Origin: Octopus sinensis
Lineage: Eukaryota
Assembly (NCBI RefSeq): GCF_006345805.1
Contig: NC_043014.1
Location: 36,208,001 to 36,272,000, forward strand
Length of the DNA: 64,000 nt
Direction: 5' to 3'
The translations under genes and the position numbers were made by a program. Each line of letters begins with the position of its first letter. Position 1 is the stretch's first letter. Below, in pieces: positions 17,289-61,654 of the stretch. The notes under the pieces are model-generated. The model was not told where the DNA came from and did not search any database. It worked only from the letters and a program-made list of their open reading frames with translations.

Positions 17289-17591
17289 CTGGTGGGATGA
17301 GTCTTTCAGAGAGTGTTTCGCCGTCCAGAAAGCATGTAAGAGTTGTTGAGCCAGCATTCCTGAAATTTAACGTATAATTAAAAATTGACACAGCTACATT
17401 GATACAATGGTCATATTGATCAACGCTCACGGAACGTGGAAATGCATTTACCCTAATGCGGGTTCTTTCAAACCATACAAAGTAAGTGGAATTTCTTGGT
17501 ACACCGATAAATGCTGTACATCTGAAGATCAATGTCTTGTTCACTTCAATTGGTGGGTTAAGAAGTTTCAGTTTACTTATGAAAGATCCCA
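17289..17591 (-). CDS. Ig gene A exon 3: C2-set-like Ig domain
   Basis: Acceptor ttcttttcag|tg, donor cca cca g|gtaagc; 303 nt, phase 1-1. VGSFISKLKLLNPPIEVNKTLIFRCTAFIGVPRNSTYFVWF...DHCINVAVSIFNYTLNFRNAGSTTLTCFLDGETLSERLIPP; C..W..C pattern and three N-x-T sequons. Confidence 0.88.
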
Positions 17592-18242
17592 CTGAAAAGA
17601 AAACGAATCAAAATATGTAAATTTTTGTACAACGAACTTTACAATAATAGATTAGATGGTTTCATTAATAGAAACTATAATCTTCATTATTTCATATAAT
17701 TTGCCACAAGGGCATCACACAGATGGAAGCTTTGCGGGCTGGATATGGACATTAATGGTATGAATGATGGTGATGCAAAAATGATGATGATGGGAGAAGA
17801 CGAAAAGCGCCCGCCGACTTTCGCCTCTCTAAAACAATGTTCTTTTTTCCCTTTTCCCTCCAAAACACAATGAGGCAATAAACCTCTTACTTAAACAACA
17901 TAATGTTCAGAATTCTTTTTTCTGTTTGAAAACACACACACAAAAAAAAGTCACATGTTTCACATTTTCTAGACTCGTTCAGGTTATCCGGCCGACCAGT
18001 ATCCTTGCTTCATTGAAGCATGCACCCGGTTCCAGGCCGAACCACACAGGTATATATTACTATATAACTATAATCTTCATATTAAACTAAAACGTTTAAC
18101 AACGCTCCAACTATTCTTAATGCTGGACTTGGTGAACTGGTGCTTCGAAATTTTCGACTGTCAAACTTTTTAGTAAAGCAGCGCGAAGGCTACGTGGAGC
18201 CAAGTCAATAGCAACAACTACACAACAAATTAATGATACACC

Positions 18243-18596
18243 ATAGGCTGCAACCGTTTGACTTCTGTCTTTAAGGAAGTCCTGCAGCCACTCTCCCAGA
18301 TTACCAGCAATCCCAAGGTCTCGCAGCTTATGACATATCATGCCATGATTTACCTTACCAAATGCTTCTGGGATGTCAAAAAATATCACATTGACATTGG
18401 AATGGTCAAGCAGCAGTTTCAAAACCCAGTCATAGGCGCAGGAGTGGCTGTGTGGTAAGTAGCTTGCTAACCAGCCACATGGTTCCGGGTTCAGTCCCAC
18501 TGCGTGGCATCTTGGGCAAGTGTCTTCTGCTATAGCCCCGGGCCGACCAAAGCCTTGTGAGTGGATTTGGTAGACGGAAACTGAAAGAAGCCTGTC

Positions 18597-18693
<97 letters not shown>

Positions 18694-19330
18694 TGTCCCC
18701 CTAGCATTGCTTGACAACCGATGCTGGTGTGTTTACGTCCCCGTAACTTAGCGGTTCGGCAAAAGAGACCGATAGAATAAGTACTGGGCTTACAAAAGAA
18801 TAAGTCCCGGGGTCGATTTGCTCGACTAAAGGCGGTGCTCCAGCATGGCCGCAGTCAAATGACTGAAACAAGTAAAAGAGTATAGTGCTGTAAAAGCTGA
18901 GTGAGGCAGCTTGTTCCTGGATGAAAGCTATGCTGTGTATTGTTTAGTAAGTAATCTTAATCTAGGAACATTATCAGTTTCTTTCTCATGATTTGTTCCA
19001 TGACTTTACTGATATGTGAAGTTGGAGAGATTATCCTGTAGTTTTGGGCCTCTGCCCTGCCCTCACCTTTGCGGATAGGGCATATAATGCTTTCTTTTAG
19101 CATTTGAGGAAGTTTACCACTTGCAAGGAAACTCTGGAAAAGCATTTGACGTGGTTTCGCTTAGGGTTGCATATATGACTTGAGGAGAATAGCTAAGAAG
19201 CCATCAAGACACGTTGCTGAACTTGAGCTCATTTCATCGATTACCACTATTGCATCTGTCTCCTCAATATTGATGTAATCAATAGCCGGCGCCTTCTTTT
19301 GTAGGGCTGCAATATTAAAGAATTCAGCTG
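18243..19330 (-). mobile_element. CR1/L2-type LINE reverse-transcriptase relic, split by a SINE
   Basis: LPQMLKESIICPIRKG...NYRIISPTSHISKVME and SCLTQLLQH|YDWVLK...VIFFDIPEAFGKVNHGMICHKLRDLGI. Confidence 0.85.
18435..18882 (+). mobile_element. SINE family A nested in the LINE
   Basis: Removing it restores the LINE reading frame; ata is duplicated on both sides. Confidence 0.9.
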
Positions 19331-19885
19331 GATTTTTTTAGCTGCACGATACTGGAGTGATTGAATTTAATTATTTATGTAAAGAATAATTTATATCATT
19401 AGCGTATTGAATTTTGATTAATATTTTTTCTCTTATTTAAGGCGACGAGGTGGCAGAATCTATAACACGTCGGTCAAAATGCTTAACGGCGTTCTGAGTT
19501 CAAATTCCACCATCAAGGACTCTGATTTTCATCCTTTTGGGTTCGATGAAATAAATACCAGTTGAGCACTGGGATCGAAGTAATCGACTTACTCCCTCCT
19601 CCGAACATACTGGCCTTGTGCCAGAATTTGAAACCAATATTTGTTGCCTTACTGCATCAACTGTCTCAGTCTACAGAAAATTATCCAACCAGATACTCTA
19701 CACAGTACGTAAAGTAGGTTCATTACAATAGAAAATACAAAAGCAAAAATAAATATTGCGCATATGAAAAGCTATAAACCTGTGTTCGATAGTGCAATGA
19801 AAACATTCCATAGAAATGAAATGAATGATAATGGAGATGAATAAGTGAAAAAAAAAAAGAAGTAAAAAATACTAGTAAAACTGAC

Positions 19886-20209
19886 CTTCAAAAGTCTTAG
19901 ATGGTGATGATTCTTCATTTGTTTTACATGAATAGTGTGTCGCATCTTCGCAACTAGCAACAAATTTCCAGCAGGTAATCTCACCTTTAGGACCAAATTT
20001 AGCTGGAGTACAATCGAAACCCTTTCGCTTGACTACTGGCTTAAACCTTTTTTCCGACCGGTCGAAATCACTTTGGAAAATAATGTTATCGTTTTGCATG
20101 AGAAAAAACTGAACGAAAAGATTTTTTACATAATACTGACAGGTTATACTTATTCCAGTGGAAGGTCCAACCTCAATAGTTTCAGGTTTCATTTTTATAA
20201 TCTTAATCC
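19886..20209 (-). CDS. Ig gene A exon 2: V-type Ig-like domain
   Basis: Acceptor tttatttatacag|gg, donor gaa g|gtcagt; 324 nt, phase 1-1. (W)IKIIKMKPETIEVGPSTGISITCQYY...KGFDCTPAKFGPKGEITCWKFVASCEDATHYSCKTNEESSPSKTFE; D-x-x-x-Y-x-C motif. Confidence 0.88.
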
Positions 20210-20269
20210 CTGTATAAATAAAAAAAAAACATAAATCCGAGATAGATTTTATAAAAAAAACCCATAAAT

Positions 20270-20410
20270 TTAGGAGGAGTAGAAGGAGGAGAAAATAAGA
20301 AAAGCAGGAAAAAAAGAAGTGCAAAGATGAGAGGAGAAAGAGAATGTAGAGTAAACAAAAGAGAAAAACAATGTGAAGAAGAAGAAAAAGAAGAGTAGGA
20401 AAAACAAAAC
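20270..20410. repeat. Purine-rich GA/GAA tract (pyrimidine tract on the gene strand) just upstream of the exon-2 acceptor
   Basis: Same position as 40250-40440 and 55468-56135. Confidence 0.8.
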
Positions 20411-20699
20411 CAAAAAATGACGAGTGCTCATTTGAGTATGAATTACATTTATCCACAGATAAATTTTAGTATTTAGTTTTTAATATTTATTATTATACAA
20501 GCATACATATGTCATAATAAATTCGACAGTTTTATTGATAGCAAAAGGTGCATCAACATAGCGTGAGAAACCGATGATGAGAGAAATCGGTCTAGTAAAT
20601 ATATGTACATACACAGAAATGAAGCATTTGAAGAACTAGATACGGTTGTAACGTCTCAGTTGAAAATATCGCCCACATAATGTATGTGTATGTATATAT

Positions 20700-21112
20700 C
20701 TCATTACTACCCACAAGGGGCTAAACACAGAGGGAACAAACAAGGACAGACAAACGGATTAAGTCGATTACATCGACCCCAGTGCGTAACTGGTACTTAA
20801 TTTATCGACCCCGAAAGGATGAAAGGCAAAGTCAACCTCGGCGGAATTTGAACTCAGAACGCAGCGGCGGACGAAATACCTATTTCTTTATTACCCACAA
20901 GTGGCTAAACACAGAGGGAACAAACAAGGACAGACAAACGGATTAAGTCGATTACATCGACCCCAGTGCGTAACTGGTACTTAATTTATCGACCCCGAAA
21001 GGATGAAAGGCAAAGTCGACCTCGGCGGAATTTGAACTCAGAACGCAGCGGCGGACGAAATACCGCAAAGCATTTCGCTCGGCGTGCTAACGATTCTGCC
21101 AGCTCGCCGCCT
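20700..21112 (-). mobile_element. Tandem double SINE family B
   Basis: Two head-to-tail partial copies (about 20700-20880 and 20880-21112). Confidence 0.85.
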
Positions 21113-21234
21113 TAATGTATGTGTATGTATATATAGACACACACAGACGCGCGCGTACACACACACACACACATACATACACATATGTATGTACATATAC
21201 ATACATATATATTCGTGCACATGTATATATATTT

Positions 21235-23879: not shown

Positions 23880-24752
23880 AACGTCCTGCAAGCCTTGGTG
23901 GAACAAAATCTCATTGTAACTGCCGAGGAACTATCAGAGAAGCTTGGATTTGGTCATTAACCATTCATCGACACCTGCGTGCCATTGGAAAAGTATGCAA
24001 ATTGGGTCAATAGGTTCCTCACAAACTTTCCGATTTTAATCATGCACAGAGAGTGAATGTGTGCTCTACTTTACTGACACGTCTTACGAATGTACTTTTT
24101 TTGGACTGAATAGTGACTGGTGACGAGAAATGGGTTCTCCATAAAAATATGAAGCGCTGAAGACAGTGGGTAGGGAAAGGAGAAACACTGGTACCACAGG
24201 CTAAAGAAGGACTTCACTCACAAGGTGTTCTTATCCGTTTGGTGGGATATGAAAGGTTTAGTGCACGTTGAATTTTTAAACCTAAACCAAACGATAACAA
24301 CGGAGATCTAATGCAAACAGCTTGGGCGGCTTAAGTCAGCGATAAACGAAAAACGACCATCTTTGGTTACAAAACAAAAGGTGTTCTTTTATGAGTATAA
24401 TGGTCGGTCACATACACCAGGAATGACATTCCAATGGCTTGAGCAGTTTGAATGGAAAACGATGCCCTACTCATCATATTCGCCGGACATTGCCCCATTT
24501 GATTATCATTGATTCCGCATTGGACAGAAAAATCATGTTGTGTATACGACGTCAGAACAATCTTGGAGGAGTATTTTTCGTCACGGACAAGTGAATTTTG
24601 GAAGAGAGGCCTTACAAATCTACCAGAGATATGGAAGGGCATTGTAAACAATGAAGGAGAGTATATTTTAGATTAAAAAATAAATTTATCTTAATTTTTA
24701 AAAACAAAAGAAGTATAAAAAAAACCGCATTATTTATGGGATGACCCAATAC
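23880..24752 (+). mobile_element. Mariner (DD34D-type) transposon relic with right TIR
   Basis: VPHKLS, IVTGDEKWV, VWWDMKG, YSPDIAPFDYH; ends ttatgggatgacccaata, complementary to the left end at about 36170. Confidence 0.9.
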
Positions 24753-24927
24753 ATACATATGTATGTTCAAGACATAAAACAAAGTATCTGCACTTATACA
24801 TACATACATTCATACATTCTACAACTTCAATATCCCTACATATCTCACATCTATTTTCTTTCCTCCACTTCACTCTCTATTTTGTATCCTATCTAAATTA
24901 AGTATTACTTAACCATCCTCTCACACC

Positions 24928-24979
24928 ATCTCCGATGAAGGGATATAATTGATAAATATCCTGGAAACAGCTGTAAGAC
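24928..24979 (+). ncRNA. Hammerhead-ribozyme-like motif in a Penelope-type terminal repeat
   Basis: atct-CCGATGA-agggatat..atatcctg-GAAAC-agct-GTA-agac. Confidence 0.45.
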
Positions 24980-25191
24980 CTTCTATCTATAAATGTTCTG
25001 ATATCTACACAGTCTTGGTTCTTTATCTCATTACGCAAAAACTTCTTATATACACACGCTGACATATAACCAACGTTGAACCCCTTATTCGCAAAATTAC
25101 CGAACCTAGAACTTAACTATGGGGTGTCTATAGCACTTATTCAGCTTTACCTGACACCTTTGGGTCTCAATGACACCATTACCTCTTATAA

Positions 25192-25228
<37 letters not shown>

Positions 25229-25478
25229 CAATAATAACTATAATAATATATAATAATAATAATAATATATATTCTCCGATTTAAAGCGACATTGATATAT
25301 ATATATATATATATATATATGGGTATACGCATGTGTGTGAGTGTGTGTGTGTGTGTGCGCATGTCTGCATATGTGTGTGCGTATAGTGCGTCTTGCGACG
25401 ATCAAAGTATGATATCTAAGACAAGAAGATCTAATACTATAACTGAAAAATGTATTATTTTACTTAATATTAACTTAC

Positions 25479-25527
25479 AGGCCGAAGTGTAAGAAGCCAT
25501 CATCAGCATCATCATAGCTAACAACAT
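25479..25527 (-). CDS. Ig gene A exon 1: signal peptide MLLAMMMLMMASYTSA
   Basis: ATG at 25527, donor gcc t|gtaagt (phase 1); hydrophobic 16-mer ending in S-A; two paralogs at 47076 and 61606. Confidence 0.85.
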
Positions 25528-25706
25528 CGTTGATCTTGAGCAACAAGTATAAAGCAAAAGGGAAAATGATCGTCGGCTCCCAGAACCTAGAAATATTACG
25601 AAAAGATGTGTCTGGTACCAAAATTGAAGTCGAAATGGCCAAACACAACAAAAAAAAAAAAAAATAGAGAGAAAAGCGCAATATATGTAAGTGGGAATGG
25701 GAGGGG

Positions 25707-26047
25707 GAGTGAAACTTGAAGTGTGAGTGAAGCTGAGATAGTTCCATCCTTCTTTTTACTTCTCTTTCTCTCTCCTCCCTCTCTCCTCCGTCTCTCTCTC
25801 TCTCTCTCTTTTGCTCCGAGAAGACAAGTAGAATATAGAGAAAACAGTTTCACAGAAAGTAAAATTCACACACACACGCACACACACATATCAATACACG
25901 CACACACACATATCAACACACGCACACACACACACACACATCAAAACGCACACACACATATCAACACACGCACACACATATCAACACACGCACACACACA
26001 TCAACACACACACACACACATCAACACACACATACACACACACGCGC

Positions 26048-26083
<36 letters not shown>

Positions 26084-26215
26084 ACATGCATACATACATA
26101 CAAATAAAGGGGGAAAATGGAAGATAGAAAAATTCAGAGTGAGGGAAGTATTGTGATTTAGAAAGAGACGCCGACTAAGAACGCGGGAGGAGAAAGTGAG
26201 GGAAAGTTGAAAGGA
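25707..26215 (-). promoter_or_regulatory. Putative core promoter / 5' region of Ig gene A
   Basis: Blocks gagtgaaacttgaagtgtgagtgaagctgagatagttccatc and gagacgccgactaagaacgcggg are kept upstream of all three signal exons. Confidence 0.5.
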
Positions 26216-26274
26216 AGTGAAAATGAGAACGAGAGATAAGGAAGAAGTTTTACAAGGAAATGTTAGAATGACAG

Positions 26275-26315
<41 letters not shown>

Positions 26316-26387
26316 AAGAGAAAGAGAAAGAAAAAAGTGAGAGAGAGAGAGAAACGGTCAAATATTTTCTTTTGTTACATTTTATTA

Positions 26388-26787
26388 TTTTACTTGTTTC
26401 AGTCATTTGACTGCGGCCATGCTGGAGCACCGCCTTCTAGTCGAGCAAATCGACCCCGGGACTTATTATTTTGTAAGCCCAGTACTTATTCTTCTATCGG
26501 TCTCTTTTGCCGAACCGCCAAGTGACGGGGACGTAAACACACCAGCATCGGTTGTCAAGCAAAGCTAGGGGGACAAACACAGACACACAAACACACACAC
26601 ACACATATATATATACATATATACGACAGGTTTCTTTCAGTTTCCGTCTACCAAATCCACTCACAAGGCATTGGTCGGCCCGGGGCTATAGCAGAAGACA
26701 CTTGCCCAAGATGCCACGCAGTGGGACTGAACCCGGAACCATGTGGTTGGTTAGCAAGCTACTTACCACACAGCCACTCCTGTGCCT
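26388..26787 (-). mobile_element. SINE family A
   Basis: Reverse-complement match to 6645-7030. Confidence 0.9.
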
Positions 26788-27080
26788 ATATTTGTTTATA
26801 TTTTTCGTAATTGATTTTTCACTATGACACTACACTGGACACTGGTTGTAGAGGCTGATCTAGCTGCCTTAACAACTTCCTAAGCTTTCTTCCGACTCGA
26901 TTGTTTAATGTGAAAGTGAATCGTTGGGAGTACTGGACTCATCAGGGTTATATGATGTCCAAGTTCCTTCTTTATTGCAGGGTCACCCAGGCAGTTGAGA
27001 AAAAAATCGAACGTTAGTGAGCAAGTATAAGTTATAAAAATTGATAAAGTGGACAGCAAACATTATTCAAGTAAGCTAAA

Positions 27081-27470
27081 TCAATATATATAAAGCTGAA
27101 GTTGTCTGTGTATCGCAAGTTTGGTAGCCTTAAACTAATACTATCTCCTCCGAGACCCTGCGGCGCAAGTTGACCAAAATTGAGAGTATGATAGAAAAAG
27201 TCTTGCTCTTCATTCCGTAGAAGATAAAATTCCAGTCGGATCATGTTAACACCAAAAATTATTTACATCAAAAAGGTGCTATTTTTTTAATGAAAATCCC
27301 TATTTTTACGATTTTTTGACAACTGTGTCGCCATTTTTCGGTGTATTTCAACCAGAAAATTGTTCACTTAAAGAGAATAACAAGCTACATAATGCAAAAG
27401 TTTTACTTTTCAAAAATTCCAATTCTAAAGGGTCGAAACAAAGCCGAGTAATGCCGGGCGATACTGCTAG
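27081..27470 (+). mobile_element. Non-autonomous Helitron
   Basis: A|TC start, subterminal hairpin-like gccgagtaatgccgggc, CTAG|T end, no TSD. Confidence 0.8.
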
Positions 27471-28166
27471 TCTATGATAAAAAGTCAGCGTACGATAAAT
27501 ATCTGTTGGGGGGGGGGGCTTCAATTGAACGGCGCGCACGGAGAGGTAAAAATTTGTTTTTGAAATAGTTTATATAGTAAGTCTGGCTGACGAGCCTTGA
27601 CTGGTGGTTCAACACAGGTGAAATCAATTGATCACAGAATTTCTATGAATTTATTTGTATTTTACTATATGTATTATTACAAATAAGAAGACTGTTTCGG
27701 AGAAATAGGCTTACTATATTCTCCGTACGTGTTTACATTTAGTGAGAGACGAGTGGTTTTGGAAGATTTTAACTCCTCTTTCAAGCAAACAGGTATTTAT
27801 CGTACCCTTACTTTTTATTATACCACAGATGGTAAGGGTTTACATAGGAAGTACTACTGATTACGCCGGGCGAAATGCTTAGCAGTATTTCGTTTGTCTT
27901 TATGTTCTGAGTTCAAATTCTGCCGAGGTCGACTTTGCCTTTCATCCTTTCGGATTCGATAAATTAAGTACCAGTTGCGTACTGGAGCCGATCTAATCGA
28001 CTGGCTCCCTACCCGAGAATTTTGGGCCTTGTGCCTAGAGTAGAAAAGATATATATATATATATACACACATTCAGGGTGTGGTGTAAGTAAGTATCATT
28101 CAAATTGAACGATTTTTTATTGGGAAATTTATAAAAAAACGATGTTTTAAATACTTTTGCTACCCA

Positions 28167-28228
<62 letters not shown>

Positions 28229-28233
28229 CATAT

Positions 28234-28840
28234 ACAGGGTGCGGTGTATAAACTGTCGCCTTAATTACGCAAAAATGAAAATAACACTGATATCTCATTT
28301 TAACAGATATATTTACCAAAATTGCCTAAAAATATCTTGAAATAATAAAGAGCAAGTATGTTCAATAAAATCGCCATTGGCTTCAACCACAGCCTCCAGA
28401 CGACTTCAGAATCTCCTGCAACTCTTCTGGACCGTCTCCTTGTTCAAGTTGGTGAATGCTGCCATAATCTTTGCCTTCAGTTCATCTCTGGTGTTACAAT
28501 GAGTTTTATGGTCTCTCGCTCAACTACACTCCACACATAATAATGAAGAGTGTTGCAGTGTGGGGAGTTAGGTGACCAGATGTTAGGGGTTATGAGGTCG
28601 CAGAAATTGTTTGACAGCCATGACTCGCTTCACCTCCATCTGTGGCATGATGCAGAGTCATGTTGTCAGATACAGGGTCGTCCAGCAGCCACCCTCTTCA
28701 CCCAGGGCAACACTACCTCCTCCACGCACTTGATGTAGACCTCCGTGTTGAGTGTGAGTGGAAGATGAATGGAAGCATAACGTCACCATCACTAGTAACC
28801 ACTCCAAATACCATGATGTTGACTGGATGTTTGATTTTTA
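28234..28840 (-). mobile_element. maT/DD37D-type Tc1/mariner relic
   Basis: KHPVNIMVFGVVTSDG, QHDSASCH...WLSNNFCDLITPNIWSPNSP, YYVWSVVE, RLEAVVEANGDFIE. Confidence 0.8.
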
Positions 28841-28992
28841 TCCCTCTCGGTACATATCTTCTCGATACTTGTCCTCAGATCCATGTCCTCGGATTGACAC
28901 GAAATGTTCGTACTGTTGTCAAACCGCGCAACATGTCATTTTCAAATTTCTGGCAGAGTGAATCGAGTCATGGGGCTGTTTTTCTCAAATAC

Positions 28993-29055
<63 letters not shown>

Positions 29056-29267
29056 GTCATTCGAAGGCTAAAACAATGCGAACGCATTGTGACCAGCGAT
29101 GTATAACTACATCTGATGGACTGGTCGGTCACGTGATGGTGATGGTGATATACACACACACATATATATATATATATAGGTTAGTACAGTTAGCGGTTGG
29201 AATGACCGTCGAAGAGATAAGAATATCCGTTTTAATACTGGTATAAATTATACAGTGTGTTCAAAAA

Positions 29268-30270
29268 GTCTCTCCGCAGTAAGTATTTTATTGCGAAATA
29301 AATATCTATAAGTTAGTATAGAACTACAAAACATTATACTAGACTTTACAAGACTTTAAAAAACTTTATAAGAGGTGTTGAAAGTGTTGTCCTTCATTTT
29401 CAGTACATAAGTTGACTCTTCTACACATGTTTTGAAATAAACCTTGGAGAGTCTGACACGTTTGGAGATTATGATTGAGGCTTTTAGCTCATTAATGGTT
29501 TTCGGGCGATTCTTGTACACTGATCCTTTACTCGCTCCCCAGTAAAAATGTCTGGCGGTGTTAAATCAGGTGATCTTGGTGGCCAAAGTCCCTTCGAAAT
29601 AATCCGTTCACCGAAAAACTCTTGAAGTAGCGCCATGATGATGCGCGAGGTATGTGTTGTAGCTCCGTCTTGTTGAAAGTGTGCATTATTAATTTCGCTT
29701 TCAGTGAGTTGGCCCACAAATGGATAGACAACATTTGAGCAATATTTCTCGGTGTTGATGGTGTCTTAAAAAAAAAATGTCGGTCCCACAATACGGTTTC
29801 TCGAAATTGCTATCCATATTCGACTTTTTCGGGATGCCAAAGTTGCTCATGCATCGCGTGTGGATTCTCAGTGCTTCATAACGTTGTGTTTTGCGAATTT
29901 ATGTGTCCCGACAGATGAAACCAAGCCTCATAGGTGTAAAAACACCCATCCAGCACTTCTATGCCTTTTTCGGCAACAACATTTTGGAACCAAGGACAAT
30001 AATGAAGCCTTTTAGCATGATCCGTAGTTTTCAATTCTTGAATGGCCAGCATTTTGTATGGAAAGAAATTTAATTTATTTTTTACTGTTGTGTGAGCACT
30101 TTGTAGGCTGATTTCCGTTTCCTGTGACAATATTGATATCCTTTTTTTTTTTACAACATTCATGTGCTATGTCTCTACGTAGATATTTATTTTCAAAAGG
30201 GGACTCATTTTCCCTTCCAAAGTTGCATCTTTTTATAACTATTATTACTTTCAGCATAACAACTATAATT
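29268..30270 (-). mobile_element. Tc1/mariner relic (WPPRSPDLTP type)
   Basis: FFPYKM..IQEL, YEAWFHLSGHINSQN, FQQDGATTH...WPPRSPDLTPPD (38 residues between the last two Asp in this copy). Confidence 0.85.
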
Positions 30271-33023: not shown

Positions 33024-34110
33024 CTAAGTAGGTAGGTGTGTATGTATGACTATATGTATTTGTTTATGTATGTATGTATGTATGTATGTATGTATGTATG
33101 TATGTATGTATGTATATATGTATGTATTTGTCCCTAGCCAGCGCTTGACAAACGGCTTTGCTTGTATAAGGTCCCATAAGATAGTAGTTCAGCAAAAGCG
33201 ACCGGAAGAATAAGTACCAGATTTAAAGTTAAATAGTGATGCGTATTTTTCGGTATTTCAAGGTTATGGACAAGCATGGTCGCAGTCCAATGACTGAAAC
33301 AAGTAAACGGTCTATGTCCGAAATGGTGAGATGTTCAGTGTTCGAATGCCTTGCTTGATGAATGCTGATCCAAACATGAATGAATGATAACAACAATGGG
33401 ATTTGTTAAGAAAAGCAATGCAGTAAGCACAAACTAAATCAATAATATTTTAATATAAGAATAACAAAATCACAGAAAAGAAAATGAATTATATAATACG
33501 AACCTGGTTGATTCGGTTTTTCTTTTCCGAGATACTTCATGCAGATTGCTAATAAAAAGCAGGGCTGTTGCAAATATTAAAATCTTAGTAATAATATTTG
33601 CATTATACAATTTATCTGTAACAGAGAGAGAAAATATATTCCATTATAATTTTGGTACAAGGCCAGAAATTTTGGAGAAGGAGGAAATCGACTACATCAA
33701 CTCCAGTACTCAATTGGTACTTATTTTATCGACCCCGAAAGGATGAAAAGCCAAGTTAACTTCGGTGGCGTTTGAACTCAGAAAGTAAAGCAGGATATAA
33801 TGCTGTTAAGAATTTTTCCTGCGTGCTCACGATTCTGCCAGATCTCCTCCTCAGAAAAAAAAATAATCAGGGATATTGAGAATTTACATAAACATGTATA
33901 AAAAAAGAAAAATAACTATAACAGCAGGAAAATAATTATGGCAACAGATTTCCTTACTTAGGGGGAAATGCTCACCAGTAGTACCATGGTAAATGCTTTT
34001 CTCTCTTCTATGTTACTCAAACTACAGGCGCATGCTCATTTTAGGGCAATTCACTCGCGCCATTCATTCACCGCCTAATAAATGTACTGGGAGTAAACAG
34101 CTCCCTCTCC
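32640..34110. repeat. Second copy of the 5760-7830 block, including a decayed copy of the neighbouring gene's first exon
   Basis: Colinear similarity; aagcatttaccATG present at 33987-33985 (minus) with 9 extra nt before gtgagc; GC-rich core absent. Confidence 0.8.
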
Positions 34111-34315: not shown

Positions 34316-35061
34316 TGTATGTATGTATATGTGTATTATATACACAAATTAAGGAGAGGCGGTAAGGTATTATAGGCCAGTAAGGCGGAGAGCTGGCAGA
34401 AACGTTAGCACGTCGGGCGCAATGCTTAGCGGTATTTCGTCTGCCGTTACGTTGTGAGTTCAAATTCCGCCGAGGTCGACTTTACCTTTCATCCTTTCGG
34501 GGTCGATAAATTAAGTACCAGTTACGCACTGGGGTCGATGTAATCGACTTAATACCTATGTCTGTCCTTGTTTGTCCCCTCTATGTTTAGCCCCTTGTGG
34601 GTAATAAAGAAATAGGTATTATAGGTCAGTAACAAAGTCTTTAGTTTTCTGTAATAATCTGTGTTCCTCCATGAGTGTGGTCTACGGGTAGTGTTTAGCC
34701 GAGCAAAGGGTATAGAGTCAAAAGATGAGATGCAGAGATGTAGCGCTCAAATAATTTGAACTTACACTCCGAAATTTTTTGTTTGCGTGTGTGTATGTGT
34801 GCTAATGTTTTCTATATTGAACATATCTGGATCTCATCTGCTGAATCATTACCCTTTGCTCAGCTGAGCGCTACCAATAGATCACACTTCTGGATATATA
34901 ATTCTTGGGCACATCTACAAGGAATATCTCAATTCCACCCTGGGATCTCTACATGAAGGTCTTACTACAGGAAACCAACGACTATATTACGGACCTTCGC
35001 CATGATAGATCGCTAGCCACTAAACCTTTTTTAATTTCTCTCCCTGTTTATTTCTGTGTTC

Positions 35062-46414: not shown

Positions 46415-46644
46415 CATATATATGGGAATATGTATGTATGTATGTATGTCGAAGAAAGAGAAAGAGCCGGTTTCTAACCTAGATCTAAGGCTCCTTCATT
46501 GGAATTTCAACATCGACAACAGGAAGTTTTTGTATGTATGTATCTATGTGTGAATGTGCATATGCAGATTTGTTTGTTTTGCTTTATGTATTATTCTAAT
46601 GCATATAGTTGCATATCTAGACATGCTCATATGTATATATATAT

Positions 46645-46868
46645 CTCTTTACTACCCACAAGGGGCCACAGAGAGGACAAACATGGGCAGACAAACGGAT
46701 TAAGTCGATTATATCGACCCCAGTGCGTAACTGGTACTTAATTTATCGACCCCGAAAGGATGAAAGGCAAAGTCGACCTCGGCGGAATTTGAACTCAGAA
46801 CGTAGCGGCAGACGAAATACCGCTAAGCATTTCGTCCGGCGTGCTAACGTTTCTGCCAGCTCGCCTTA
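46645..46868 (-). mobile_element. SINE family B
   Basis: Reverse-complement match to 15879-16105. Confidence 0.88.
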
Positions 46869-47075
46869 TATATGTATATATATATATATGTATGTATGCA
46901 TATGTATATATATATGTATGTATGCATGCAAGCATGTATGTGTGTGTATATGTGTGTGTATGTGCACGCGTGCGTACGTATAGTGCGTCTTGTGACGATC
47001 AAAGTGTGATATCTATGACAAGAAGGTTCAATGTTGTAATTGAAGAAAATATTATTCCTCTTGATATTAACTTAC

Positions 47076-47124
47076 GGGTCGAAATGTGAGAAGCCATCAT
47101 CAGCATCATCATAGCTAACAACAT
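47076..47124 (-). CDS. Ig gene B exon 1: signal peptide MLLAMMMLMMASHIST
   Basis: ATG at 47124, donor acc c|gtaagt (phase 1). Confidence 0.85.
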
Positions 47125-47790
47125 TGTTGGTCTTGAGAAACAAGTATAAAGCAGAAGGAGAAGTGATTGTCGGCTTCCAGAAACCGGAACTGTTACGAAA
47201 TGATGTGTCTGATACAAAAAGTGGTGTCGAAATAGTCAAACACAACAAAAATAGAGGAAAGCGCAATATATGTAAGTGTGAATAGGAGTGGGGAGTGAAA
47301 CTTGAAGTGTGAGTGAAGCTGAGATAGTTCCATCTTTCTGTTTCTTTCTCTTTTTCTCTTTCTTTCTCTCTCTCTCCCTCTGTCTCTCTTCTGCTTCGAG
47401 AAGAAGGCAGGTAGAACATATAGAAAACAGTTTGACAGGAAGTTTAAGTCAACACACACACACACGCACACATACAAGTACACACACATGCACGAACGCA
47501 CACACGCACGCCTACACACATACGCACGTACAAATGATGAAAAGGAAGATGGAGAATTTCAAAGTATTGAGAGAGTGAGTGAGAGAAGTATTTTGGTCAA
47601 AAAAAAAAGAAGAAAAAAAAAAGACGCCGACTTAGAACGCGGGAAAGGAAAGTGAAGGAAAGTTATAAGGCTATGAAAATAAGAAAGGGAGAGAAGAAGG
47701 AAGATTGACAAGGAAGAGTTACAGTAAAAGATTATGAAGAACGTCATGGAAAAGGGAGAGGGAGAGAGTGAAAGGGAGAAAGATAGATCG

Positions 47791-47841
<51 letters not shown>

Positions 47842-48137
47842 AAGAGAGAGAAAGAGAGAGAGAGAGAGTAAGAGAAAGTGAGAGAAACGGTAAAAAACAT
47901 CTGCTTTCTTTTACTACAGTGGGTAGGTATTTTTTGCTAATTGATTTTTTTTAGTATGGCACTACACTGGACACTGGATGTAGAGGCTGATCTAGCTGCC
48001 TTAACAAGTTCCTGCCTTTCTTCCAACTCGGCTGATTCATGTCAAAATAAATCGTTGGAGGTGCTGGGTTTATCAGGATTTTGTCCAAGCGCCTTCTTTA
48101 TTGCTGAGTCACATAGGCAGTTAGGTAAAAATGTATT

Positions 48138-51304: not shown

Positions 51305-52270
51305 TTGTGGAAATATTGAGACCACCCCTCAAGTGACTAAAAGGTGGTCTAACTCATTGATATAAAGCAAAGAACTCTGGGTGATTGACAGATTGGGTTG
51401 GTAAGCAGTGCACTGTGAGCCGTGGTTGAGAGCGTTGAATCTTGTGAAACAGTAATAGTAGTGCGTCGTGTAAATAATTTCTTTCTTCCCTGCTTCGTTA
51501 TATATAATACAAAAATAAGTGGCACGAGTTGTTCATAGCTTGCGTTACACGTTTAAAAAAAATTTTTGATACGAAACCAAACGAAAAATTCGTTTAACAT
51601 AGAGAACTTATTGGCCTCTGTTGTGAAGTTGCAATAGCAATAGCAACAACAACAACAACTACAGCAGTAGCAACAGTTACAGCAGCAGCTGCAACTACAA
51701 GAGCAGTAACAGCACTTGAAATCCGAAAATACTTCAAGATCGTACTCGCCGGACAGCGAAGCAAATTCAATTGAAGAATTCAGCTATAATCCAGAAGAAG
51801 GGATTACCTTCTCTGCGTATTTTCGTAGATACGAAGAAATCTTCAAAACAGTTGGTGCGACGAGAAAAAAACTACTACTACTTTTAAGAAAGTTATCCCC
51901 CGCAGAACACGAAAAATATTGTAATTATATTCTGCCAAAAACTTCAGGTGATATTTGCTTCGACGACATAATTAATTCTTTATCAAAAATTTTCGGTGAA
52001 AATAGTTCCCTCTTCAATACTCGCAGGCAATGTTTAAATTTTGTAGAAAAAGATGAAGAATTCGCCGGAGTCCTTAATAGAGAGTGTGAGAAATTCAAAT
52101 CGAATGAATTGACCCCGGACATGTTCAGAAGTTTAATTTTTATTCAAGAGCTTACTGCAAGTAAAGATGCAAATATACGTTCCCGGATATTAACAAAATT
52201 AGAACAGGACCAAATATTAACTCTGCAGGCAGTAGCAGGAGAATGTCAGAGGATTATAAGTCTGCGACAT
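51305..52270 (+). mobile_element. Gypsy-type LTR retrotransposon 5' relic: LTR, PBS-like site and gag
   Basis: tgt...aca segment (about 51305-51510), tggcacgag PBS-like motif, ORF 51716-52336 with FSYNPEEGITFSAYFRRYE...LLRKL..AEHEKYCNYILPK...IRSRILTKLE typical of K02A2.6-like gag. Confidence 0.8.
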
Positions 52271-52789
52271 GACATTATCTTTTCGCCAAATTTCCACTTC
52301 AATAACATGAAACGCTGTAAATTTAAATATACTTAGCCTTGCCATATAGAATAATGTATTTTAATGCATTTTTTTTGCTCTTAACTACTATTCAGTTGTA
52401 CATGAGATTTACGATCACCTGGCCACATTACTACACAAATACTTGGCTAAATACCTTCTGTAAGGCCTTTCTTTAATAGGAAGTAGTCCACAAGTGACGG
52501 AGTTTCGTGGGTTATCGAACTGAGCCCCCAACAATAATGAAGCCACCGCTTTTAGATGCAAGACAAAGTCGTCTTGTATAATTTGAACCCGAGAAGTAAA
52601 CGGACATGACTAAATTTACAAAACATTTTCTACACCACTCTTATTCATTTTCCTATTCTACCGCCCTTTTTATCCATAAGACTAAACTTATATGTTTCTT
52701 AGCAGTCACATTGATGCCATAATACTGAAATAGGAAGTTGTCAAACTATAAATAGAGTGTGTGTGAATTTAATTTATATATACATGCGC

Positions 52790-52836
<47 letters not shown>

Positions 52837-52879
52837 GTGTATTCTCTTCTGTTGTTACTTATTTTAATTCTTGTTCTGA

Positions 52880-53740
52880 AGAAGGAGCTTGCTGTTACGC
52901 TAACAGATTTTTATATTCATAATGTGCAAGATATTTGTTTGATTTTTTTTTCTGAAAGCCCTAACTTATCCAGATTGTCACTTAGGCATTTACTCACGAA
53001 ACTTAGTGCACCAATTATTATTGGTAGAAATGCGAACCTTCATATGTAACCTGGCTGCTTCGGAGAACTTGTCCATAGTTATCACTATTCTCTTTCATTT
53101 TCAAAAAGATATTCACATGAACGGGTCAGCTGACCTCTACGACGATACATACCTTGTTTCTTGTCTGTCCCCAATAACTATATCTGGCCTGTTACTTTTA
53201 CAATTGATAGATGTTTTGATGGGAATATTCCACCTGTATTCCTTGTGTTGATCATAGTCTATGTAATCAATAAGAGGGAAATTCACTATATTTATTCCAG
53301 GACAGTTTTTCTTTCGAAAGGCCATTGTATATTTTTTTGCGACAATATCGTGTCGCATGTGTGTGCGGGTGGGGGTGGTGCTTCGGTGACACTTTTTGGC
53401 AGTTGTTAATCACAATTGATTACACCATACATTACGTCGAACTGTATACCGTAGAATAAGGTTTGCAAAAAATGCACTGAGATGTAGCAGTAAATTAACA
53501 TATAGCTATTAGGAGACTTTTCGAGGCTTTTCGACCTGCGAGAAATGGCAGCAAAATCCCAATCTTTTCTGGACATATTTGATATAGTCCTAATTGTACT
53601 CTGCTTTAAAACCATAGTCGTGATTGCCACAGCTGGAATATCTTTAGGTATAGGTCTGCTCAGACAGATCAAACATCAAAGACGTGAGACTAAATAGCAA
53701 CAATAATAACAAGAACATGCAAAAGCGCTAATCAAAGAAA
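52880..53740 (-). mobile_element. RLE-type non-LTR retrotransposon relic 3' of Ig gene C exon 3 (best preserved copy)
   Basis: RHDIVAK, WNIPIKTSINCKSNRPDIVIGD, VVEVS*P, PIIIGALSFVSKCLSDNLDKLG. Confidence 0.8.
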
Positions 53741-53754: not shown

Positions 53755-54056
53755 TTAGTTGAAGAGTAATTTAGTTAGAGTTTGGCCATTCACAAAACAT
53801 GTGATGTTTGTTACGCCAAAGTCCTCCTGTTTTACAGTGTATTTATAAATTGACGCTACTGGAGTTAAACACTCGTCACGAGATGGAACTTTAATGTTAT
53901 CCTCATGTAAACTTGTATCATTACGCTTTCTTTTAAACCATAGAAAGTCTTTAATGCCAAAAGGTGCTGGGACATATGCTAAACATCTGAAGATCGCTGT
54001 CTTGCCCACTACAATGGGTAGGTTAACAACTGTTAGTTTATCTAGGTGAGATCGCG
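53755..54056 (-). CDS. Ig gene C exon 3: C2-set-like Ig domain ending in TAA
   Basis: Acceptor ttcttttcag|cg; ARSHLDKLTVVNLPIVVGKTAIFRCLAYVPAP...LWF...DECLTPVASIYKYTVKQEDFGVTNITCFVNGQTLTKLLFN*; donor gcaa|gtaagt 4 nt after the stop. Confidence 0.88.
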
Positions 54057-54965: not shown

Positions 54966-55079
54966 TATCAAAGGTTATAGATCTGGGTTCGATAGTGCAA
55001 TAGAAACGCGCCATAGAAATATAATGAGTGATAATGGAGATGAATAAATGAAAAGAAAAAAAAAAGAAGTAAAACTGAC

Positions 55080-55397
55080 CTTTTAAAATCTTAGTTTCTG
55101 AAGTTTGGGCATATGCTGTAAATGAATAGCTTGCGGCATCCTTACATGTGGGGTTAAATTTCCAGCAGGTAGTCACACCTCTATAATCAGTGATTGTAGA
55201 ACACTCGAAACCTCTACGCGCCTCTTTATAATATGAGCGTGCATCCCAATGATATCTAAATGTGAAAACAATATCGTTGTTTTGCATGAGGTGAAAGTTA
55301 ATAGGACCTAGCAGCTTAAACTGGCATATTATAGTTATTCCAGCAGTGTTTCCAAATTCAATATAATGAGGAGGTGAGATGTCTAGAATTCTAATAT
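55080..55397 (-). CDS. Ig gene C exon 2: V-type Ig-like domain lacking the F-strand Cys
   Basis: Acceptor tttactacatag|at, donor aaa g|gtcagt; 318 nt. (Y)IRILDISPPHYIEFGNTAGITIICQF...RRGFECSTITDYRGVTTCWKFNPTCKDAASYSFTAYAQTSETKILK. Confidence 0.86.
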
Positions 55398-55467
55398 CTA
55401 TGTAGTAAAAAAAGAAAACAACAACAAAAAACAGATAGTTTTTATGAAAAAAGTATAAATGTAGTTA

Positions 55468-56135
55468 TGGAACATGAAAGAAGAAGAAGAAGAAGAAGAA
55501 AGAGGAGGAGGAGAAGAAGAAGAAGGAGAAGAAGAAGAAGGAAGAAGAGAAGAAAAAGAATGAAGAAGGAAGAGGAGGAGAAGAAGAATGAAGAAGAAGA
55601 AGAAAGAGGAGGAGGAGAAGAAGAAAGAGGAGGAGAAAAAGAAGAAGAAGTAGAAGAAGAAAGAGGAAGAGAAGAAGAAGAATGAAGAAGAATGAAGAAG
55701 AAGAAGTAGAAGAATGAAGAAGAAGAAGAAGAAGAAGAAAGAGGAGGAGAAGAAGAAGAAGAAAGAGGAGGAGAAGAAGAAGAAAGAGGAGAGAAAAAGA
55801 AGAAAGTAGAAGAAAAAGAAGAAGAAGAAGGAAAGAGGGGAGAAGAAGGAGGAAGGAGGACAGAAGGAGAGGAGAAGAAGAGAAGAAAAAAGAAGAGGAA
55901 GAAGAACGAAGAAAGGAAAGAGGAGGCGGAGAAGAAGAAGAAGAAAGACAAGGACCCAGATTTAGAAGAAGAAGAAGAAAGAGAGGAGAAGAAGAAGAAG
56001 AATGAAGAAGAAGAAGAAAGAGGAGGGAAGAAGAAGAAGAAGAAAGAAGAGAAAGAGGAGGAGGAGAAGAAGAAGAAGAAGAAGAAGAAGAAGAAGAAGA
56101 AGAAGAAGAAGAGCAGGAGGAGCAAGAGGAGGCGG
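55468..56135. repeat. About 670-bp (GAA)/(GGA) purine tract
   Basis: Directly visible; accounts for the poly-F/S and poly-E/R ORFs. Confidence 0.95.
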
Positions 56136-57046: not shown

Positions 57047-57106
57047 TCAATCACTGGCTAGTGATGAAGAACTCATTCCACTCGCAAAATACTATATCCT
57101 GTGTAT

Positions 57107-57485
57107 AGGCGCAGGAGTGGCTGGTGGTAAGTAGCTTGCTAAACCAACCACATGGTTCCGGGTTCAGTCCACTGCGCTGGCATCTTGGGCAAGTGTCTCT
57201 GCTATAGCCCCGGGCCGACCAATGCCTTGTGAGTGGATTTGGTAGACGGAAACAGAAAGAAGCCTGTCCGTATATATGTATATATATATATGTGTGTGTG
57301 TGTTTGTGTATCTGTGTTTGTCCCCCTAGCATTGCTTGACAACCGATGTGGTGTGTTTACGTCCCCGTCACTAGCGGTTCGGCAAAAACAGACGATAGAA
57401 TAAGTCCTGGGGTCGATTGCTCGACTAAAGGCGGTGCTCCAGCATGGCCGCAGTCAAATGACTGAAACAAGTAAAAGAGTAAAGA
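57107..57485 (+). mobile_element. SINE family A with many single-base indels
   Basis: Matches the other copies apart from scattered 1-2 nt gaps. Confidence 0.85.
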
Positions 57486-59740: not shown

Positions 59741-59779
59741 GATATTGAAAAACACGGAATGTTCTTAATCTGACCAGAC

Positions 59780-60636
59780 TGAAACTAAAAACGGTTTTTA
59801 CTTCAGTCATTAGGGAACTTTCGTACGCTGACGATTGTGATCTTGTCAGTCATTCTGATACAGGTCTGCAATCTCTTGTATCTGCGTTTGTTGGCTTGGA
59901 GTCACGCGTTTGGTGCCAGCGACATATAAATAAGAATACAAAGCTGGCTCTTTACAAATCATTTGTCTTACCATCCCTGTTGTATTCTTGTGAAAGATGG
60001 ACTTGTTATGAAAGGCATTTTCAATTGTTAGAACAATTCCTCCAAAAATGCCTTCATCGCATTTAAAACGTTAAATAGAGATATTTTACTCTAAAAACAG
60101 ATCTCCTTGTACCTGCTGGCATCACCTCAATTAAATCTATGATTTTGAGGAACCAAATGAGATGGTGGGCCGAAACAACTGTTTTATGGTGAGCTTCCAG
60201 AGGGGAAACGCTATAAGCGTAAGCCTAAAAAAAGGTTTAAGGACGGTATAAGGACTACTATGAAGTCATTTGGAATGGATCCATAAGACATAGAAATCCC
60301 TGCTTCGAACTGAGTTGGATGGTGAACAAAAGTGTGGAGTGGAGTAAAAGCATTTCTAGAGACCAGGACAACACACGTAAGTCTCAAAAGAGATCTAAAA
60401 AAGAATGTTACAATCGAGAAGGTGAATGACAATGACCTTTTTCTGTGTACAGTTTGTGACAGACCATACTTTTCTTTAGCTGGGTTTAAATTTCATTTGC
60501 GATCATGGAAAACGAACCTCCACCAACAATTCTGCCTATATATCTGTGCATACCTTTGAATGTAGTGTATGCCAGAAGGTCAGCAAATCTAACGGAGGCC
60601 TCAAAAGACATGTTAAGATCCACAAAGATTAGAACT

Positions 60637-60718
<82 letters not shown>

Positions 60719-60720
60719 TG
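59780..60720 (+). mobile_element. RTE/BovB-type LINE 3' part with two C-terminal C2H2 fingers and (TAGA)n tail
   Basis: RELSYADDCDL, KLALYKSFVLPSLLYSCERW, PKQLFYGEL..GKR..RKPKKRFKD, FLCTVCDRPYFSLAGFKFHLRS, FECSVCQKVSKSNGGLKRHVKIHKD*, then (taga)n. Confidence 0.88.
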
Positions 60721-61129
60721 TTTCTTTATTAGTCACACAGGGCTGCACACAGACGGGACAGATTACTAAGTAGAGCTTTTCTTTTTGGGGAAAGAAAAAA
60801 AAAAAGGTGGGGTAGGTTTTCGATCAAAAGGGATCGTAAAAGGGAAAGAAGAAAAAAAAAAGGAAAAGAGACAAAAGAAAAAAAAACGATCAATAGGGAT
60901 CGTGTATCACAGAAAAGCCTACGGAAAAGACCACGGTAACCTCGGTCTTGTATTGTTACATGTTACCACATTTGTTTGCAAGTAGGTAACCCTCTGTTTT
61001 ACATTTCCGGGTTCATAGAATTATGCTGAAGGTGGCTTCGTCATTCATACGTGCCATCCTTGCTATATTCATCCATCTTTTTTTAAAACATTCGCTAGAA
61101 AAAACTTGCCTCTCTACTCTCACTTACCT

Positions 61130-61174
61130 TTTCAAGATAGATAGATAGATAGATAAATAGATAGATGAAGATAG

Positions 61175-61238
<64 letters not shown>

Positions 61239-61520
61239 GTAGATAGATAGATAGATTGACAGATAGATAGATAGATATGTGTGTATGTATCTATGTATAT
61301 ATTTATGGTAGCATGTATGTATGTATGCATGTATGCATGCAGGTCTGTATGCATCTATGAATGCTTGCATGTATGCATGTAAGCATGTATGTATGCATGT
61401 ATGTATGCATGCATGTATCTATGTAAGCATGTATGTATGTATGTATGTATGTATGTATGTATGTATGTATGTATGTATGTATGTATGTATGTATGCATGC
61501 ATATATGTATGTATGTATAG
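61130..61520. repeat. (GATA)n and (TATG)n tetranucleotide microsatellites
   Basis: Directly visible. Confidence 0.95.
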
Positions 61521-61605
61521 TGCGTCTGGCGACGATCAAAGTATTAAATCTGAAACAGATTCAGTGATGGAAGCGAAGAAAATATTTTTCTTAATATTAA
61601 CTTAC

Positions 61606-61654
61606 AGGCCATAGTGTAGGAAGCCATCATCACTATCATCATAGCTAGCAACAT
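61606..61654 (-). CDS. Ig gene C exon 1: signal peptide MLLAMMIVMMASYTMA
   Basis: ATG at 61654, donor gcc t|gtaagt (phase 1). Confidence 0.85.

Follow-up and report, generated by a model that had tools for sequence, protein, structure and literature searches.

Among the small immunoglobulin (Ig) proteins of Drosophila, some members of the Beat and Dpr-DIP groups are secreted or linked through glycosylphosphatidylinositol (GPI). In many surface proteins that combine a variable-type (V) and a constant-type (C) Ig domain, the ligand binds at the CC'C'' edge of the GFCC'C'' sheet. Cephalopods are large and long-lived for invertebrates, show complex behaviour, and carry heavy parasite loads; to our knowledge, little is known of their non-self recognition, and we know of no diversified recognition receptors in these animals. 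The Drosophila Beat and Dpr-DIP proteins, with one to three Ig domains each, are locally expanded and serve as recognition labels (PMC10084454). The VCBPs are secreted-type and lineage-restricted, and it is their N-terminal V-like Ig domains that diversify (PMC13428168). Here, we analyzed a 64,000-nucleotide stretch of the Octopus sinensis genome, hereafter the window, that holds three related genes, A, B, and C, each encoding a V-C protein of two Ig domains. The window was placed on GCA_006345805.1 CM016876.1 at about 36.208-36.272 Mb; the checked part, 4832-30099, was 100% identical over 25,268 bp. As the best explanation, we consider it fairly probable that A, B, and C are tandem genes of an octopod-restricted Ig superfamily (IgSF) family whose products are secreted recognition proteins under diversifying selection.

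Boundary inspection, together with a scan for ATG-N46-GT exons, revealed three minus-strand units, each composed of three exons joined at AG/GT phase-1 junctions. Up to the donor, the first, second, and third exons of A, B, and C measure 49/49/49, 324/324/318, and 303/302/306 nt, respectively. The spliced proteins comprise at least 225 aa with an open frame (A), 223 aa (B), and 222 aa (C), and their pairwise identity is 38-50%. A tblastn search of the whole window returned three V-type exons, three C-type exons, and no others, which agrees with the tandem, diverged array that the initial annotation had proposed; all Ig-like reading frames in the window lie on the minus strand. The coding exons are as follows.

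25479-25527, minus strand: gene A exon 1, ATG and 16-residue hydrophobic leader MLLAMMMLMMASYTSA, 49 nt, phase 1, donor GTAAGT
19886-20209, minus strand: gene A exon 2, predicted V-like Ig domain, 324 nt, acceptor tatacAG, donor G/GTCAGT
17289-17591, minus strand: gene A exon 3, predicted C-like Ig domain, 303 nt, acceptor ttttcAG, donor G/GTAAGC, frame open
14832-14890, minus strand: gene A exon 4, coding part, (V)KIRSENNGIQSYIIVMLI followed by TGA, acceptor ttaaAG, exact match to the tail of XP_036366490.1
47076-47124, minus strand: gene B exon 1, leader MLLAMMMLMMASHIST, 49 nt
39853-40176, minus strand: gene B exon 2, predicted V-like Ig domain, 324 nt
37584-37882, minus strand: gene B exon 3, predicted C-like Ig domain, ending at TAG 37586-37584
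61606-61654, minus strand: gene C exon 1, leader MLLAMMIVMMASYTMA, 49 nt
55080-55397, minus strand: gene C exon 2, predicted V-like Ig domain, 318 nt, with Phe (YSF) instead of the F-strand Cys
53755-54056, minus strand: gene C exon 3, predicted C-like Ig domain, ending at TAA 53757-53755

Splicing reproduced exactly the protein lengths and exon sizes given in the initial annotation. That annotation had also described the frames as uninterrupted; the lengths of B and C are borne out, but both frames stop a few bases ahead of the conserved GTAAGT, and A reads through to its donor and continues into the non-conserved exon 4. In gene B, the third exon covers 302 nt (37882-37581) up to a relic donor GTAAGT at 37580; in gene C, it covers 306 nt (54056-53751) up to a relic donor GTAAGT at 53750. 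With exon 4, which contributes a tail of 19 residues, the product of gene A reaches 244 aa. A search for copies of exon 4 in genes B and C found none, and no counterpart of it occurs at the orthologous site of O. bimaculoides. The 7.5-kb segment downstream of A that holds exon 4 (9138-16668) is itself without counterpart at the O. bimaculoides junction L003 13589-13601, which is free of N; within this segment, 15033-15758 resembles 52709-53466, downstream of C.

The canonical phase-1 GT-AG junctions previously assigned to the three genes proved exact; the V-C junctions of A and B recur in XP_036366490.1 and CAI9737731.1, respectively, and the leader-V and V-C junctions of C in the X2 model of LOC106880713, all independent models. 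The array as described is far beyond chance. Gene A corresponds to RefSeq XP_036366490.1 (LOC118766814, 191 aa; 100% match), a partial model starting at an internal Met, which reproduces the exon 2-3 junction exactly and then passes from ...ERLIPP into VKIRSENNGIQSYIIVMLI, encoded at 14890-14832. The leader of gene A is also used by the RefSeq model of an O. bimaculoides paralogue (P0001). Gene B is identical over about 150 aa to part of a 726-aa O. vulgaris model, CAI9737731.1 (P0003), which reproduces the V exon and the V-C junction. The best database match of gene C, from O. bimaculoides, is 65% identical.

The initial annotation had not recognized a named gene, and none was found, although A already has the partial RefSeq model. 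The next consecutive locus number, LOC118766815, is a family gene located about 290 kb away. The known family entries (O. sinensis LOC118766814-816; O. bimaculoides LOC106880708/709/713/714/715 and LOC128250265-272; O. vulgaris CAI9737731-738) are all labelled 'uncharacterized' or 'hypothetical', and the family is present in databases only as such uncharacterized entries. It was absent from the literature searched by locus name, accession, and topic. The present models correct the annotation: the O. sinensis model of A is partial and none was found for B and C, and the O. vulgaris and O. bimaculoides models are either fused or shortened at runs of N.

The fused model CAI9737731.1 spans 144 kb and joins several family units, among them B and part of A. 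On this account, the three units might be alternative exon cassettes of one long transcription unit, a reading that we regard as highly improbable. The model omits half of B's domain 2 and adds repeat-derived exons, its terminal exons lying in repeats, which is typical of run-on predictions. RefSeq lists separate genes for both O. bimaculoides and O. sinensis, the frames of B and C contain in-frame stops, and every unit has its own ATG leader exon within a duplicated 5' block of 0.7-1 kb. These leader blocks, whose mutual match is 70-80%, are presumed to be the 5' untranslated and promoter region, duplicated along with the gene.

25295-25998, minus strand: conserved 5' block of gene A, around the leader, 70-80% to the B and C blocks, conserved in O. 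bimaculoides paralogues
46867-47877, minus strand: conserved 5' block of gene B, 82% to O. bimaculoides L001 23769-24751
61397-62472, minus strand: conserved 5' block of gene C, 84% to O. bimaculoides L001 9585-10258

A, B, and C are three real, separately initiated genes for V-C proteins of two Ig domains. Tandem duplication would have supplied each gene with its own 5' block, 49-nt leader exon, V exon, and C exon. Additionally, the shared non-coding blocks reported earlier are real beyond the leader: 16868-17621 resembles 37155-37910 and 19848-20492 resembles 39812-40531 between A and B, and 39821-40434 resembles 55051-55659 between B and C. The genes also lie between microsatellites, as had been noted, with the repeats abutting exons: (AC)n at 37496-37574, (AAG)n at 55478-56112, (AGG/GAA)n at 40289-40412, (CA)n at 25867-26087, and (TATG)n at 61276-61518.

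Next, the window was compared with the corresponding region of O. bimaculoides (CM046620.1), where the order is a 263-aa member, LOC106880713, LOC106880714, LOC106880708, and another 263-aa member. By position, C corresponds to LOC106880713, B to LOC106880714, and A to LOC106880708, so the order C, B, A is the same in both species. The X2 model of LOC106880713 shares C's leader-V and V-C junctions and ends at the identical stop codon. The models of LOC106880714 and LOC106880708 look odd, with repeat-derived tails and no leader. Runs of N occupy 17179-19144 and 24076-29869 in the stored O. bimaculoides sequence L002, with several more in L001 and L003; they cover the expected sites of the LOC106880714 domain-2 exon and of the LOC106880708 leader and probably explain the truncation of the two RefSeq models. 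A loss of the C-domain exon from the B orthologue and of the leader from the A orthologue was considered and dropped, as both sites fall in N runs. A supposedly shifted donor in the O. bimaculoides B exon came down to a change from AAG/GT to AAA/GT. Because A's exon 4 has no copy in B, in C, or at the orthologous O. bimaculoides site, the conserved unit is leader + V + C, and the sequence beyond the donor is evolutionarily labile.

The ends of several models were also traced in the window. For the 48 C-terminal residues of O. bimaculoides LOC106880714, a 96% match lies at 33473-33616 (minus strand), with a second copy at 7116-7187 (minus strand); the first site sits within an interspersed repeat at 33055-33946, also present at 7042-7531. 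The tails of the fused O. vulgaris model (9042-9083 and 7071-7112) and of LOC106880708 (32754-32849 and 5887-5964) map to repeats as well. Because these tails map to repeats, the terminal exons of several family models are repeat-derived or prediction artefacts.

For the fold, the initial annotation had proposed a profile-library search of the spliced proteins and structure prediction followed by Foldseek. The former gave no Pfam Ig match above threshold for A, B, or C (the best was 'ig' with E = 0.5 and 11.1 bits, below the cut-off of 21.8), and among 38 relatives only two reached E <= 0.01 for 'ig'. The latter pointed to an Ig fold. The AlphaFold model of C's O. bimaculoides orthologue, built on the 38-row family alignment, had a predicted local distance difference test score (pLDDT) of 93.3 and a predicted template modelling score of 0.82; the prediction was confident only with this alignment, a 7-row alignment giving a pLDDT of 38.6. 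DSSP assigned nine strands to domain 1 of the model (17-24, 36-44, 50-55, 58-66, 71-77, 81-83, 90-98, 107-111, and 116-124) and seven to domain 2. Foldseek returned 464 matches in the PDB at E <= 1e-3, and the top 50 listed were all Ig-domain chains. The nearest were the IgV-IgC ectodomains of the butyrophilins (BTN) BTN3A1 and BTN2A1 (best E = 6.5e-6, template modelling score up to 0.56), followed by antibody chains and T-cell receptors (TCRs). By this structure comparison, the family proteins are predicted to adopt the two-sheet beta sandwich of the Ig fold.

Profile searches against the PDB gave matches that were weak but consistent. The whole-protein family profile found antibody light chains and Fc-gamma-RII (E from 6e-4), the domain 1 profile found V domains only (TCR-alpha V, PD-L1 V, and CRTAM), and the domain 2 profile found antibody kappa constant (C1-set) domains. 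In UniRef, the paralogues are named 'Ig-like' or 'V-set domain-containing', with P0041 as 'V-set'. On the model, domain 1 is V-like, with nine strands that include C' and C'' and the features of the V-set, among them a motif before strand F of the D-x-A/G-x-Y-x-C type (EDATHYSC, DDAAYYSC, and KDAASYSF). Domain 2 is modelled as C-type, either C1 or C2, and its nearest sequences, kappa constant and Fc-gamma-RII domains, are weak matches. The layout first described, V followed by C2 with one domain per phase-1 exon, is thus upheld as V-like plus C-type, with C2 as one candidate label for domain 2.

The Ig hallmark residues are distributed unevenly. Domain 2 carries the full Cys/Trp/Cys triad in all three proteins (C149/W164/C211 in B numbering). 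In domain 1, the Cys pair of strands B and F is present in A and B, and the C-strand Trp occurs in none of the three copies, being replaced by Phe or Leu. Domain 1 holds three extra Cys and domain 2 one, before strand E. Judged by loop position, a disulfide between the domains could link the Cys in the E-F loop of domain 1 to the one in the D-E loop of domain 2.

The products would be small, secreted, N-glycosylated proteins of two Ig domains. Secretion is suggested by the 16-residue hydrophobic leader with small residues at -3/-1, two to three N-x-S/T sequons per protein, eight Cys, and the fact that none of the three products has a membrane span. We infer it because B and C stop after domain 2, the tail of A is short, and a membrane span is missing.

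To compare rates of change, A, B, and C were aligned with their O. bimaculoides orthologues over five exon pairs (516 codons). Amino-acid identity was 58-71%, and the ratio of nonsynonymous to synonymous divergence (omega) was 0.91-1.25 by Nei-Gojobori; pooled omega ranged from 1.09 to 1.31 across four estimators. Exons mismatched at 17.7% of sites (278/1569), compared with 9.7% (342/3521) for flanking introns, a Jukes-Cantor ratio of 1.94 (Fisher p = 5.7e-15), and four of the five exons were individually significant. The ratio of transitions to transversions was 1.9 in the flanks versus 1.0 in the exons (p = 1e-4). All 26 Cys and Trp residues were kept between orthologues, and the single exon-length difference was 3 nt, in frame. 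With random substitutions of the observed number, the probability of no stop across the five exon pairs was 7e-5.

The substitutions are concentrated in one stretch of the mature V domain, residues 45-77, which covers the end of the BC loop together with strands C, C', and C''. In this hot spot, 61% of positions differ, compared with 31% elsewhere (leader 22%; permutation p < 5e-5). Hot-spot omega was 4.8 (YN00) or 6.1 (maximum likelihood), values inflated to an unknown degree as the segment was delimited post hoc and pools only 95 codons from three gene pairs; synonymous divergence (dS) in it was 0.13-0.16, near the intron value. For the remainder of the protein, omega was about 1.0. The hypervariable segments are the following.

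20028-20129, minus strand: hypervariable segment of gene A, end of the BC loop and strands C, C', and C''
39992-40093, minus strand: hypervariable segment of gene B, end of the BC loop and strands C, C', and C''
55219-55314, minus strand: hypervariable segment of gene C, end of the BC loop and strands C, C', and C''

The comparison shows a conserved scaffold, with change that is faster than neutral and concentrated on the C-C'-C'' side of the V domain. The family would evolve by local birth-and-death duplication and diversifying selection. Its Ig scaffold (Cys/Trp, frames, and splice sites) is held, the other parts of the ectodomain change at least as fast as neutral sequence, and change at the C-C'-C'' edge is several-fold faster. 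The orthologue was the nearest neighbour in nearly every 45-nt window, and conversion among A, B, and C was ruled out as the cause of the pattern on this ground. A hot-spot dS of 0.335 by Nei-Gojobori, examined as a sign of conversion or old alleles, was mostly a path-averaging artefact, in view of the YN00 and maximum likelihood values.

Several observations weigh against secreted recognition proteins under diversifying selection, and some of them would suit decaying or functionless duplicates, that is, leftover frames under relaxed constraint combined with gene conversion or a locally high mutation rate. An overall omega near 1, as found outside the hot spot, is also expected under relaxed constraint. 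Outside the hot spot, dS is about 0.16-0.18, above the intron divergence of 0.10; conversion from other cluster members or paralogues, mutation bias, or old alleles may have raised it. In a few of the 45-nt windows, the nearest neighbour is a paralogue. Gene C has lost a canonical Cys, the F-strand Cys of its V domain being replaced by Phe, as in the paralogue LOC118766815. Two homology searches and a representative search found no protein matching C and no O. sinensis protein model for B or C, B appearing only within the fused O. vulgaris model; this absence could mean low or no expression. Apart from decay, the O. sinensis and O. vulgaris sequences of B show no difference over their roughly 150 aa of overlap, which does not point to extreme polymorphism; secretion and the signal peptide were judged by eye alone, and the hot-spot omega carries the inflation described above.

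Even so, neutral decay cannot produce exons with about twice the divergence of introns, nor does it explain the shift in the ratio of transitions to transversions from 1.9 to 1.0. The frames have stayed free of stops against a probability of 7e-5, the 26 Cys and Trp residues and all splice sites are intact, exon indels are few and in frame, and the orthologue is the nearest neighbour almost throughout. We therefore consider decay an improbable account of the three genes.

The search was then extended to the family as a whole. An exhaustive hidden Markov model (HMM) search of 1.84 billion representatives retrieved 44 relatives, 30 of whose clusters were looked up: 26 were named and four were raw read assemblies. 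All 26 named relatives came from Octopus or Argonauta, namely O. sinensis, O. vulgaris, O. bimaculoides, and Argonauta hians, and the majority of members share one chromosome, where they form several series of consecutive loci. The family hallmarks, which the window genes share, are the leader MLLAMMxLMMASY and, in domain 1, G-F-D-C ... C-W-K-x(3,4)-C-x-D-x(3)-Y-x-C, with an HMM E <= 1e-10; the missing C-strand Trp of domain 1 and the additional Cys ahead of strand E in domain 2 also belong to them. On these sequence matches, the family appears octopod-restricted and chromosomally clustered. The earlier proposal of a lineage-specific, locally expanded cephalopod family holds for the expansion and the lineage restriction, but the range is octopod instead of cephalopod (26/26 named relatives).

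The relatives differ from the window genes beyond domain 2. P0020 (O. vulgaris LOC115221679) and P0036 (Argonauta) continue into a stalk, followed by a transmembrane segment with a cytoplasmic tail, whereas C-terminal hydrophobic (GPI-like) tails occur in P0021-26 and P0038, and Thr-rich mucin-like stalks in P0004 and P0016. Several family models read straight past the conserved G/GTAAG donor ('...GKQ...'), and because they do so, the phase-1 donor is common to the whole family. Because distant relatives keep a stalk and a transmembrane or GPI-like tail past this same donor, the window genes look like soluble derivatives, and an ancestral V-C-stalk-transmembrane surface protein may have given rise to A, B, and C in this form.

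The same tails allow another role, in which the proteins are cell-surface or neuronal wiring molecules, either tethered via alternative 3' exons or acting as ligands of membrane-bound paralogues, in a code of the Beat/Side, Dpr/DIP, or JAM/CAR-like kind. Distant paralogues do have transmembrane segments, and the Argonauta protein P0036 ends in -SAV, which we take to be a class I PDZ-ligand-like tail as in CAR/JAM. The phase-1 donor past domain 2 is kept in all copies and used in gene A, and paralogues such as LOC106880715 show several isoforms with different tails. However, B and C stop ahead of the donor, the C orthologue at the identical codon, and the tail exon of A is non-conserved and, with only 19 residues, not long enough to cross a membrane. 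Receptors used in wiring mostly evolve under purifying selection, compared with an omega of at least 1 here. On balance, we find the wiring role rather unlikely.

Proteins that are small, secreted, lineage-restricted, and tandemly expanded, with omega above 1, are also typical of reproduction. A, B, and C could accordingly serve in reproduction, as seminal, spermatophore, egg-coat, or gamete-recognition proteins shaped by sexual selection or conflict, being small, of secreted type, and from a lineage-restricted tandem expansion with omega >1 on one surface. We hold this to be unlikely, and more so than wiring: nothing in the sequence indicates the gonad, and the Ig V-C layout is commoner in immune or adhesion roles.

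Returning to secreted recognition proteins, the C-C'-C'' face would be the one that binds a fast-changing partner, and by analogy with other V-C proteins we take it as the putative binding face. The recognition role suggested in the initial annotation is backed by the rate analysis and remains inferential. For this extracellular role, we rank an immune-type function first, cell-cell recognition with membrane-bound paralogues second, and reproductive recognition third. An octopod-only, one-chromosome V-C family, with exons changing at about twice the intron rate and a hot spot on the usual ligand face, is a concrete candidate for non-self recognition; equally fast-evolving cell-cell or reproductive recognition fits too. 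A further proposal, which we put forward tentatively and consider doubtful, is that a germline-encoded tandem repertoire of soluble V-C Ig proteins, with a hypervariable C-C'-C'' binding patch that resembles complementarity-determining regions and is driven by strong diversifying selection, constitutes an independently evolved immune-type or self/non-self system in octopods. If true, the immune-type reading would describe a system comparable in logic to amphioxus VCBPs or snail FREPs.

Besides the Ig genes, the window contains other elements. It is AT-rich (about 37% G+C) and dense in microsatellites and interspersed repeats. A short interspersed nuclear element (SINE)-like sequence of about 400 bp is present in at least 10 copies of 77-94% identity, several of them inside introns of A, B, and C, and copies occur in the O. 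bimaculoides loci too. A second repeat family of about 235 bp (88-98% identity) includes a tandem pair with a period of 184 directly upstream of A's V exon.

6642-7028, 10317-10702, 12759-13164, 16191-16616, 18432-18880: SINE-like copies
26388-26789, 42659-43015, 43763-44129, 57105-57483, 62517-62973: remaining SINE-like copies
6121-6360, 15877-16109, 20697-21113, 34378-34617, 39351-39699, 46642-46865, 62986-63223: copies of the repeat of about 235 bp

Between B and C, a 206-aa open reading frame at 51716-52336 (plus strand) matches Pfam DUF7083 (E = 2e-15) and is taken to be of retroelement type, separate from the Ig genes. At 8534-8608 (minus strand), Rfam mir-9/mir-79 matched with 58.7 bits against a gathering score of 58.6. 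The hairpin formed there is a perfect palindrome of 38 bp (dG -78 kcal/mol, z = -17.9) whose arm departs from the consensus within the seed region; it seems more likely to be a transposon-type inverted repeat than a true miR-9 gene. ARAGORN called a putative tRNA-Thr (CGT) at 4428-4502 (plus strand), either a gene or a tRNA-derived repeat.

Finally, the family was compared with known systems. The B7/butyrophilin proteins BTN3A1 and BTN2A1 (PDB 4f9p, 8zyr, and 9jqq) are the best structural neighbours (E = 6.5e-6, template modelling score 0.5-0.56 to cryo-EM chains) and share the V-then-C order. In B7/BTN genes, as in the window genes, a short leader exon precedes phase-1 exons that each encode a single domain. 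However, identity is only 11-14%, and the window genes encode neither a transmembrane region nor a B30.2 domain; their V domain lacks the C-strand Trp and has three extra Cys. B7/BTN is a vertebrate family, and orthology to the octopod genes is not implied.

The two-domain V-C layout is also shared with CTX/JAM/CAR (V + C2 + transmembrane segment + PDZ-binding tail), and the distant members P0020 and P0036 have a transmembrane segment and a tail. By architecture, the ancestral form of the family would resemble CTX/JAM/CAR. In the window genes, the membrane and cytoplasmic parts are missing, and evolution is fast rather than conserved; the family profile searches found no sequence-level (HMM) link to CTX/JAM/CAR.

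Among invertebrate systems, FREP, VCBP, Dscam-like cassette, and Beat readings of the locus were considered and set aside. Like amphioxus VCBPs and snail FREPs, the octopod family is lineage-restricted, tandemly expanded, and of secreted type, with a diversifying N-terminal V-like domain. Unlike them, the window proteins end after domain 2, without a chitin-binding or fibrinogen domain, and no Pfam match to a fibrinogen-related or chitin-binding domain was found in any of 38 family members. The Beat/Dpr-DIP proteins are likewise locally expanded small IgSF proteins, but they have no detectable sequence relationship to the octopod family. They are conserved across insects and mostly under purifying selection, whereas the octopod family is confined to octopods with omega >= 1. 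Set apart by extra domains or by sequence from B7/BTN, CTX/JAM/CAR, and VCBP/FREP, the octopod V-C family is an IgSF family of its own.

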